From contig NC_042997.1 in the NCBI RefSeq assembly GCF_006345805.1, positions 206,274,001 to 206,338,000 on the forward strand: 64,000 nt of DNA, given 5' to 3'. A program made the translations under genes and the position numbers. The DNA is from Octopus sinensis. Its lineage: Eukaryota. Below the pieces are notes generated by a model. That model saw only the letters and a program-made list of their open reading frames with translations, was not told where the DNA came from and did not search any database. Below, piece after piece: positions 2,889-61,485 of this stretch (the first letter of the stretch is position 1; each line of letters begins with the position of its first letter).

Positions 2889-3037
2889 ACACTGCATCAT
2901 CGAAAGCATCCCTTCCTGGTTCACCACAGGAACCCTCTTCTGTGGCACCCAGTACTAATGTGATGTCCGGACGATATGATGACATCAAAATAAACCTCGC
3001 AAAGGGTACAATTTCTAATGTACCTGTTAATGTATCT
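2889..3037 (+). CDS. Exon A1: S/P-rich linker plus macro beta1 ([50 protein letters not shown])
   Basis: Acceptor tttttcag, donor gtgagt; 2 nt + 49 codons; paralogous to 47705 and 59424. Confidence 0.85.

Positions 3038-61485: not shown

Follow-up and report, generated by a model that had tools for sequence, protein, structure and literature searches.

Results

A four-exon unit occurs three times in one reading frame

The analysed stretch of Octopus sinensis DNA, 64,000 nucleotides long and here called the window, contains three copies of a macrodomain-encoding module (M1, M2 and M3) on the plus strand, each built from exons A, B and C, with a short linker exon, D, between consecutive copies. 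In M1, exon A1 (2889–3037, 149 nt, beginning in phase 1) covers the S/P-rich linker and opens macrodomain 1 with its first beta strand, exon B1 (3315–3542, 228 nt, phase 0-0) encodes the core of the domain with the VDVIVN motif, loop 1 and the conserved block, and exon C1 (4142–4363, 222 nt, phase 0-0) encodes its C-terminal half. The linker exon D1 (41150–41204, 55 nt, phase 0 to 1) contributes 18 residues and one further nucleotide and makes an in-frame joint from C1 to A2. M2 consists of A2 (47705–47841, 137 nt; linker and start of macrodomain 2), B2 (48119–48346, 228 nt; core) and C2 (48958–49182, 225 nt; C-terminal half), and is followed by D2 (57456–57537, 82 nt, 27 residues and one nucleotide, phase 0 to 1), which has an internal 27-nt duplication. 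M3 comprises A3 (59424–59560, 137 nt; linker and start of macrodomain 3), B3 (59833–60060, 228 nt; core) and C3 (61258–61485, 228 nt; C-terminal half), the last ending in phase 0 at a GT donor.

The coding blocks were located by self-comparison, by stop-free frames and by three-way alignment of the copies, and the D exons were placed by tblastn with the linker seen in an octopus homologue (P0010, a metaclust peptide), where 18 residues stand between IIK and TKLSSP. Splicing of C to A through a weak alternative donor 4 nt downstream, considered as a way of repairing the frame, was dropped once the real D exons were found at 41150 and 57456. All 11 exons have a polypyrimidine tract and AG on the 5′ side and GT on the 3′ side; D1 and D2 share the acceptor ttttaacag and the donor gtaaac. 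The phases are identical in every copy (A 1 to 0, B 0 to 0, C 0 to 0, D 0 to 1). Spliced in the order A1-B1-C1-D1-A2-B2-C2-D2-A3-B3-C3, the exons form a stop-free sequence of 1919 nt and 639 codons, for which the probability of remaining open by chance is ~1e-19 by our own arithmetic (~38% GC, a random stop every ~15 codons). The exon map, the identical intron positions and phases and the single open frame of three macrodomains with S/P-rich linkers had been put forward in an initial annotation of this DNA, and all were verified; 2889 is the first base of A1 and 61485 the last base of C3.

Exon A begins with the S/P-rich stretch, and exon D encodes a short charged or acidic linker. Exons A, B and C together measure 3n+2 nt, a length at which repeats of these three alone would lose the frame. 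Exon D measures 3n+1 nt, and the complete unit A+B+C+D is therefore a multiple of three with phase 1 at both ends, so that each tandem copy adds one macrodomain and leaves the frame intact. The D exons thus restore the phase needed by exon A, which bears out the earlier proposal that one frame runs across the modules; the same joins are present in a public O. vulgaris gene model (CAI9714785.1, described below), and XP_029635758.1 and P0010 show C-D-A junctions in paralogues. The exon indels between copies (12, 3, 3, 3 and 27 nt) are all multiples of three, and the introns have many indels that are not. The 12-nt indel is an in-frame tandem duplication in A1 (3021–3032) relative to A2 and A3 that adds NVPV. 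The 27-nt duplication in D2 (57483–57509) is also in frame and repeats NEGVINKQE as NEGFHSK..; a D2-type duplication is found in O. vulgaris P0043 as well. A further D exon was sought before A1 (1–2888) and after C3 (61486–64000), and none was found. The frame is open at both ends, and the gene thus runs on beyond the window.

The modules encode PARP14 macro2-type macrodomains

All three modules scored above the gathering cutoff of the Pfam Macro profile (PF01661, 22 bits), with 64 bits for M1, 73 for M2 and 69 for M3 (E 1.6e-17 to 2.6e-20), and matched 106–113 of the 118 profile positions, a profile check having been suggested in the initial annotation. Among all PDB chains the best structures were human PARP14 macro2 (3q71, E 1.4e-22) and a macro1-2 construct (3vfq, E 1.5e-35), in which the stronger stretch fell on macro2. 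Matches to PARP14 macro1 (3q6z, 4.6e-11), PARP14 macro3 (4abk, 6.6e-11), PARP9 (1e-15) and PARP15 (3e-7) were weaker, and those to macroH2A were also much worse. Residues 2–171 of the M3 query aligned with 3vfq_A 233–403 and 3q71_A 39–209, which is the whole domain. The description of the repeats as macro-2-like was thus upheld, with PARP14 macro2 the best solved relative, ahead of macro1 and macro3 (~1e-11).

The octopus modules share with human PARP14 macro2 (3q71, 3vfq, 5o2d) the motifs D-V-[IV]-V-N-S, L-S-K-S, FP-x-[IL]-G-x-G-x-L-x-[FY]-P and F-[VL]-[VL]-[YH]-P-x-D. VDVIVN, the loop 1 glycine and the equivalent of Ser1047 are present in M1, M2 and M3. Loop 2 reads GAGTLNYP in M2, GAGKLKYP in M3 and GA-EMNYP in M1, one residue shorter; the same short loop 2 occurs in module X of the XP_029635758.1 paralogue and in a module of another octopus family locus (L001). 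In an alignment of 37 module sequences a 40-codon core is nearly invariant.

Human PARP14 macro2 and PARP15 macro2 are reported to have a hydrolase activity on an unidentified linkage that needs Ser1042 and Ser1047 (2025 study, PMC11920425). By alignment with PARP14, the Ser1047 equivalent (G-x-x-S-K) is invariant in all octopus modules. The Ser1042 equivalent is among the most variable positions of the 37 modules, being N, Q and D in M1, M2 and M3, respectively (codon contexts LQLNDG at 3351–3368, LQLQKG at 48155–48172 and LELDSG at 59869–59886, plus strand). Human macro2 binds ADP-ribose, and with the macro2 motifs kept each octopus module is predicted to do so and should bind this ligand.

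The human and octopus genes both encode multi-macrodomain proteins, but their composition differs. Human PARP14 has three anciently diverged macrodomains together with RRM/KH-like regions, a WWE domain and a PARP catalytic domain, whereas the octopus gene repeats one macro2-type domain 3–4 times at ~75% amino-acid identity, with no macro1 or catalytic exon in the window. Exons of the macro1 type, a hydrolase-type macrodomain, and RRM-like exons were sought in the window, and none was found.

Duplicated DNA and repeats around the modules

Self-comparison of the window revealed three copies of a segment of ~1.5–3 kb, at roughly 1462–4465, at 42434–43597 with 47371–49248, and at 58092–61579. Positions 2879–4429 matched 47694–49248 at 92%, and 2218–3574 matched 58762–60092 at 93.7%; 40280–41218, around D1, matched 53033–53812 and 57352–57551, around D2. 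The duplication covers introns and the upstream flank as well as exons, the duplicated flank lying at 1462–2888 with counterparts at 42434–43597 and 58092–59423 (plus strand). As the initial annotation held, the amplification is recent and includes introns, which are 95–99% identical among copies.

A repeat of ~750 bp (1462–2218, 42434–43190 and 58092–58720, copies 96% identical) forms part of the upstream flank of every module and occurs once more, inverted, in the C2-to-D2 intron (52249–52542); this is probably a dispersed element that was copied together with the module. Just before A2, with 54 nt between them, the plus strand carries at 47371–47650 a stray partial copy of intron 1 that runs through the acceptor into the first ~22 nt of exon B. 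Intron 1 of an O. sinensis paralogue (L002, 12115–12394) matches it at 97% identity, and the copy could act as a decoy acceptor.

The window is AT-rich and laden with repeats. A satellite with a 332-bp unit, repeated 29.9 times with 96% matches at 18107–28062, takes up ~10 kb of the 36.8-kb C1-to-D1 intron and has strong positive GC and AT skew; directly upstream lies a tandem array of five 161-bp units (17253–18055, 95% matches). Long TA/CA-type simple repeats at 6000–8000, 12500–16900, 31100–36300 and 38040–38520 lower the GC content to as little as 16–19% and give rise to many spurious YIYIYI... ORFs. Coding remnants of transposons were found within introns at 30300–31115 (minus strand), 37311–37820 (minus) and 62051–62500 (plus), comprising two reverse-transcriptase fragments that match RVT_1 (E 1e-17 and 1e-22) and one DDE_3 transposase fragment (E 3e-7). 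Relative to the homologous end of the C1-to-D1 intron, the C2-to-D2 intron has a 3.5-kb insertion at 53812–57352, with minus-strand ORFs at 54474–54926, 55199–55450, 55947–56171 and 56721–56942 that have no Pfam match; the insertion is possibly the remnant of a DNA transposon.

Related loci suggest how the gene may continue in both directions

A near-identical public model is the O. vulgaris protein CAI9714785.1 (P0021; UniProt A0AA36EWS3; 824 aa), annotated as 'Hypothetical predicted protein / Macro domain-containing protein', which is 97% identical to the spliced ORF over 92% of that ORF. Its exons run B1-C1-D1-A2-B2-C2-D2-A3-B3-C3, with the same joins and the same D1 and D2 linkers, and continue into D3 (KFREYLLKTEKFHSK), A4 and B4. 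Relative to the ORF of the window it has ~11 substitutions and a 6-aa deletion in A3. The model is a computational prediction with a gene range of 110 kb, in which the first 82 residues look spurious and A1 is skipped. The initial annotation had spoken of a hidden gene; this description must be given up, because a near-identical model with the same structure is already public.

A second O. vulgaris locus (L004, OX597842.1) is collinear with positions 47869–64000 of the window at 97.6–98.9% identity (98.85% over 51293–62451). Beyond the part shared with the window it contains D3, a fourth module and a last linker exon, KFNEYFQEILANGSAA (57149–57199 of that locus), with an in-frame TAA. The suggestion that more copies might lie outside the window is supported by a fourth module both in CAI9714785.1 and at this locus.

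The O. sinensis gene LOC115211026 (locus L003; XP_029635758.1 = A0A6P7SCI3, PARP14-like isoform X2, 441 aa) has two modules with the same module and linker structure, and its upstream flank is 97% identical to window positions 2–2751. It begins with a 14-aa start exon (..IPVEIMAEK, phase 1) located 12.5 kb upstream of the first A exon and spliced directly to the module, and its last linker exon (58043–58093) has the same in-frame stop as L004. The gene provides a template for a whole gene, from start exon through modules to stop-bearing last linker exon, but with two modules against three in the window. Its modules are ~80% identical to M3 at the amino-acid level, and it is a paralogue of the window locus; an earlier assignment as the orthologue, with four modules against two, was withdrawn, since its O. 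vulgaris orthologue is CAI9716701.1 (L007). Two further sequences, P0035 and P0037, were rejected as the downstream end of the present gene, as they mark another family cluster ~6 Mb away. The XP_029635758.1 protein was found by mass spectrometry in the skin mucus of O. vulgaris (8 peptides, 4 of them unique, 25% coverage), and its abundance was 2.8-fold higher in animals kept in aquaria (PMC11431876).

The last linker exon of L003 and L004, encoding KFNEYFQEILANGSAA, ends in an in-frame TAA five bases before the donor. In catalytic paralogues the same linker exon reads on into the PARP domain. The comparison points to a truncation by point mutation, common to O. sinensis and O. vulgaris, that would have made macro-only proteins. 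The PARP catalytic domain (PF00644) was searched for by tblastn with the tail and PARP region of P0025, and no match was obtained in the window or in L001–L004, the relatives being covered to 10 kb downstream. The precomputed Pfam lists of the octopus relatives contain only PF01661 and PF00644. The initial annotation had proposed looking in the flanks for a WWE/PARP catalytic end; no catalytic end was found, and the related loci stop in the last linker exon. Judged from these loci, the product is probably a macro-only array of four macrodomains that has no PARP catalytic domain.

Module number differs among loci and species

Other octopus PARP14-like proteins in the database have at most two such modules, with or without macro1 and the PARP catalytic domain. 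P0025 combines macro1, two modules and PARP, P0026 and P0027 have two modules and PARP, and the Argonauta protein has two modules; macro1 is present in some other octopus family members (P0024, P0025 and L001). The orthologous pair formed by O. sinensis L003 and O. vulgaris L007 (CAI9716701.1) is collinear at 98.0–98.4% identity and has two modules in the former and three in the latter. Both 30694–44395 and 45385–60620 of L007 correspond to 31129–46322 of L003, representing a 14.7-kb tandem duplicate of a module with its D exon. By this comparison, domain-level copy number is changing on the timescale that separates O. sinensis from O. vulgaris. A lineage-specific expansion within one protein, as proposed at the outset, agrees with the two modules against three at this paralogous locus and with the limit of two in the other octopus PARP14-like proteins.

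Introns look younger than the exons they separate

Intron 1 (3038–3314, with counterparts at 47842–48118 and 59561–59832, plus strand) is 95–99% identical in every module copy compared from O. vulgaris and O. sinensis, and the alignable part of intron 2 (3751–4141, with counterparts at 48555–48957 and 60855–61257, plus strand) is likewise 95–99% identical among paralogues. Exon identity among paralogous modules is 76–84% for A, 85–94% for B and 83–90% for C. Paralogues diverge with dN of 0.06–0.16, dS of 0.09–0.16 and dN/dS of 0.7–1.5. Fourfold sites in conserved codons differ at 7–16% compared with 2–3.6% for introns, a 3–5 times higher level (Fisher p ~0.001–0.007 in most pairs). For M3/L004 and M2/L004, frame and gap problems in exon A made these estimates unreliable, and the counts for exons B and C were used instead. 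Even between the window and L004, which are 98.9% identical, exons B and C had 9 differences in 456 positions compared with 4 in 936 for the introns, and the exon changes were clustered.

No such excess was present in true orthologues. Between the O. sinensis and O. vulgaris copies of modules X and Y there were 8 differences in 1188 exon positions and 28 in 2811 intron positions, 7 of the 8 exon changes being nonsynonymous. Exon hypermutation or pervasive positive selection was thereby ruled out as a general claim. The pairs M3/X and M4/Y, at one point taken for orthologues, are in fact paralogues. Functional constraint on the introns was ruled out by their divergence in O. bimaculoides, where module L008 differs from M1 by ~7% mismatches and indels in introns. 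A conserved intronic RNA is unsupported, because an Rfam search of the window at gathering thresholds returned nothing; module 1 (2800–4500) gave only a chance-level match to mir-4077 (E 0.3).

Variation in the exons is mosaic. Exons B and C of 12 genomic copies contain 85 informative sites, and 37% of site pairs failed the four-gamete test. In a PHI-type permutation, incompatibility between neighbouring sites was 0.274, compared with 0.371 ± 0.014 after permutation (p<0.0005). In the 37 modules, aligned as protein, a small set of alternative cassettes (LPGIM/LPRTM, VVNF/DVYF, GPQIQ/GSEIQ and SDLN/SNQN) recurs in many combinations. The simplest account is frequent gene conversion among modules, which would be invisible in introns that are already homogenised, and these comparisons are best fitted by a process of gene conversion in which the introns become uniform and the exons stay diverse. 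Selection for variety could account for the survival of the exon differences, but so could weak constraint alone. The reading frames have clearly been preserved: indels in exons always come in multiples of three, all 12 copies have exons B and C free of stops, and the 40-codon core is kept.

MHC class I and II loci are multigene families with homogenised introns and diverse exons. The octopus family resembles them in that introns look several-fold younger than exons and exon variants are shuffled as short cassettes; it differs in that the octopus repeats are domains inside one gene and between paralogous ADP-ribose-binding genes.

Discussion

Taken together, the data suggest, with a probability of roughly 0.8 for the joint reading, that the window spans the middle of a single PARP14-like octopus gene with tandem repeats of a four-exon macrodomain unit, and that the product of this gene would be a macro-only protein of four modules. 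In each unit, exon A supplies an S/P-rich linker and the first strand, exons B and C the rest of a PARP14-macro2-type macrodomain, and exon D a short acidic linker. By the nearest public copies, the whole gene would also start upstream of the window with a short 5′ coding exon and end, after a fourth unit downstream, in a stop-bearing last linker exon, and its product would be a protein of ~850–900 aa with four macrodomains. Such a protein would string ADP-ribose-binding domains along a flexible chain, may have a measure of hydrolase activity, and would read or remove marks of mono-ADP-ribose. By analogy with PARP9/14/15, it plausibly takes part in innate defence based on ADP-ribosylation. Within the family, the introns would be kept almost identical by gene conversion and unequal crossing-over, while an older mosaic diversity would survive in the exons, mainly in the parts encoding the linker, loop 1/helix 1, loop 2 and the final strands. 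This pattern, which is present in the alignments, would be expected if selection keeps variety among the binding modules, a cause that is here only proposed.

A single transcription unit extending past both ends of the window is favoured by the compatible phases, by public models with the same joins and by the absence of a start exon between the modules. The initial annotation had considered separate tandem genes less likely, on the ground that exon D has no stop and a donor in phase with exon A, and this judgement holds. Three single-macrodomain genes in tandem, having promoters and 5′ exons of their own and using the D exons as 3′ terminal or alternative exons, would be in keeping with the many public octopus models that have one module (200–310 aa), with a Met inside exon A or an end reading into the intron after C or D, with the in-frame ATG in exon A of M1, and with the real short start exon (..IPVEIMAEK, phase 1) of the paralogue L003. 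However, that start exon has no copy anywhere in the window, no ATG-initiated exon was found between the modules, and neither M2 nor M3 has a Met ahead of exon C. The A acceptors are in phase 1, and the D donors are strong and restore exactly this phase. Multi-module models have come from two annotation pipelines, whereas the short models lie mostly on short contigs or read through donors. Separate genes thus appear distinctly unlikely.

It is highly unlikely that the modules are an untranslated relic, a pseudogenised stretch of a PARP14-like gene drifting neutrally. A dN/dS of ~1 among modules, which relaxed constraint alone would also give, is compatible with decay, as are the 7 nonsynonymous and 1 synonymous changes between true orthologues, the shortened loop 2 of M1, in which one residue of the glycine-rich loop is missing, and the loss of the catalytic end through a stop at a family locus. 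In a relic, however, one would not expect 11 of 11 exons to be open with intact splice sites, exon indels to be restricted to multiples of three beside many other intron indels, exons B and C to be open in all 12 genomic copies, or 40 codons to be nearly invariant in 37 module sequences; moreover, a paralogue with the same shortened loop 2 has been found as a protein (PMC11431876). An assembly artefact, with one or two real modules collapsed or expanded from different haplotypes, has in its favour that chromosome OX597814.1 and a separate scaffold, OX597842.1, carry the nearest O. vulgaris copies with 97–99% identity, which may partly be haplotig duplication. It is extremely improbable for the window itself, as the modules differ by 8–22% in their exons, the repeats that separate them are different (the 10-kb satellite, the RT fragments and the 3.5-kb insertion), the D exons measure 55 and 82 nt, and the order M1-D1-M2-D2-M3 recurs in a gene model from an independent assembly. 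One gene with a tandem four-exon unit is therefore the reading that we prefer.

What the present analysis adds to the public annotation is the logic of a symmetric four-exon cassette, the probable loss of the catalytic end, and the discordance in age between introns and mosaic exons. The concept of the macrodomain is unchanged and the gene model is already public, and the value of the finding is that of a lead. The macro2-type amplification is very recent and still variable, with 2, 3 or 4 copies according to locus and species, and it offers a natural series of close macrodomains whose binding or hydrolase specificities can be compared.

A further-reaching reading, which we consider unlikely, is that the macro2-type modules form a diversified recognition repertoire, in which exon variety, greatest near the ADP-ribose pocket and extending to the Ser1042 equivalent, would be kept by selection and reshuffled by gene conversion as the introns are homogenised. 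Since the unit is symmetric (phase 1-1, 3n nt), any splice from a D exon to a later A exon would be in frame, and alternative splicing could yield combinations of 1–4 macrodomains. If true, such a repertoire would represent an invertebrate immune-type system made of ADP-ribose readers or erasers and not of Ig, LRR or FREP folds. In vertebrates, macro-PARPs (PARP9/14/15) evolve fast and are linked to interferon; to our knowledge almost nothing is known about them in molluscs. The present findings suggest that ADP-ribose readers may serve octopuses in defence or at the skin surface.
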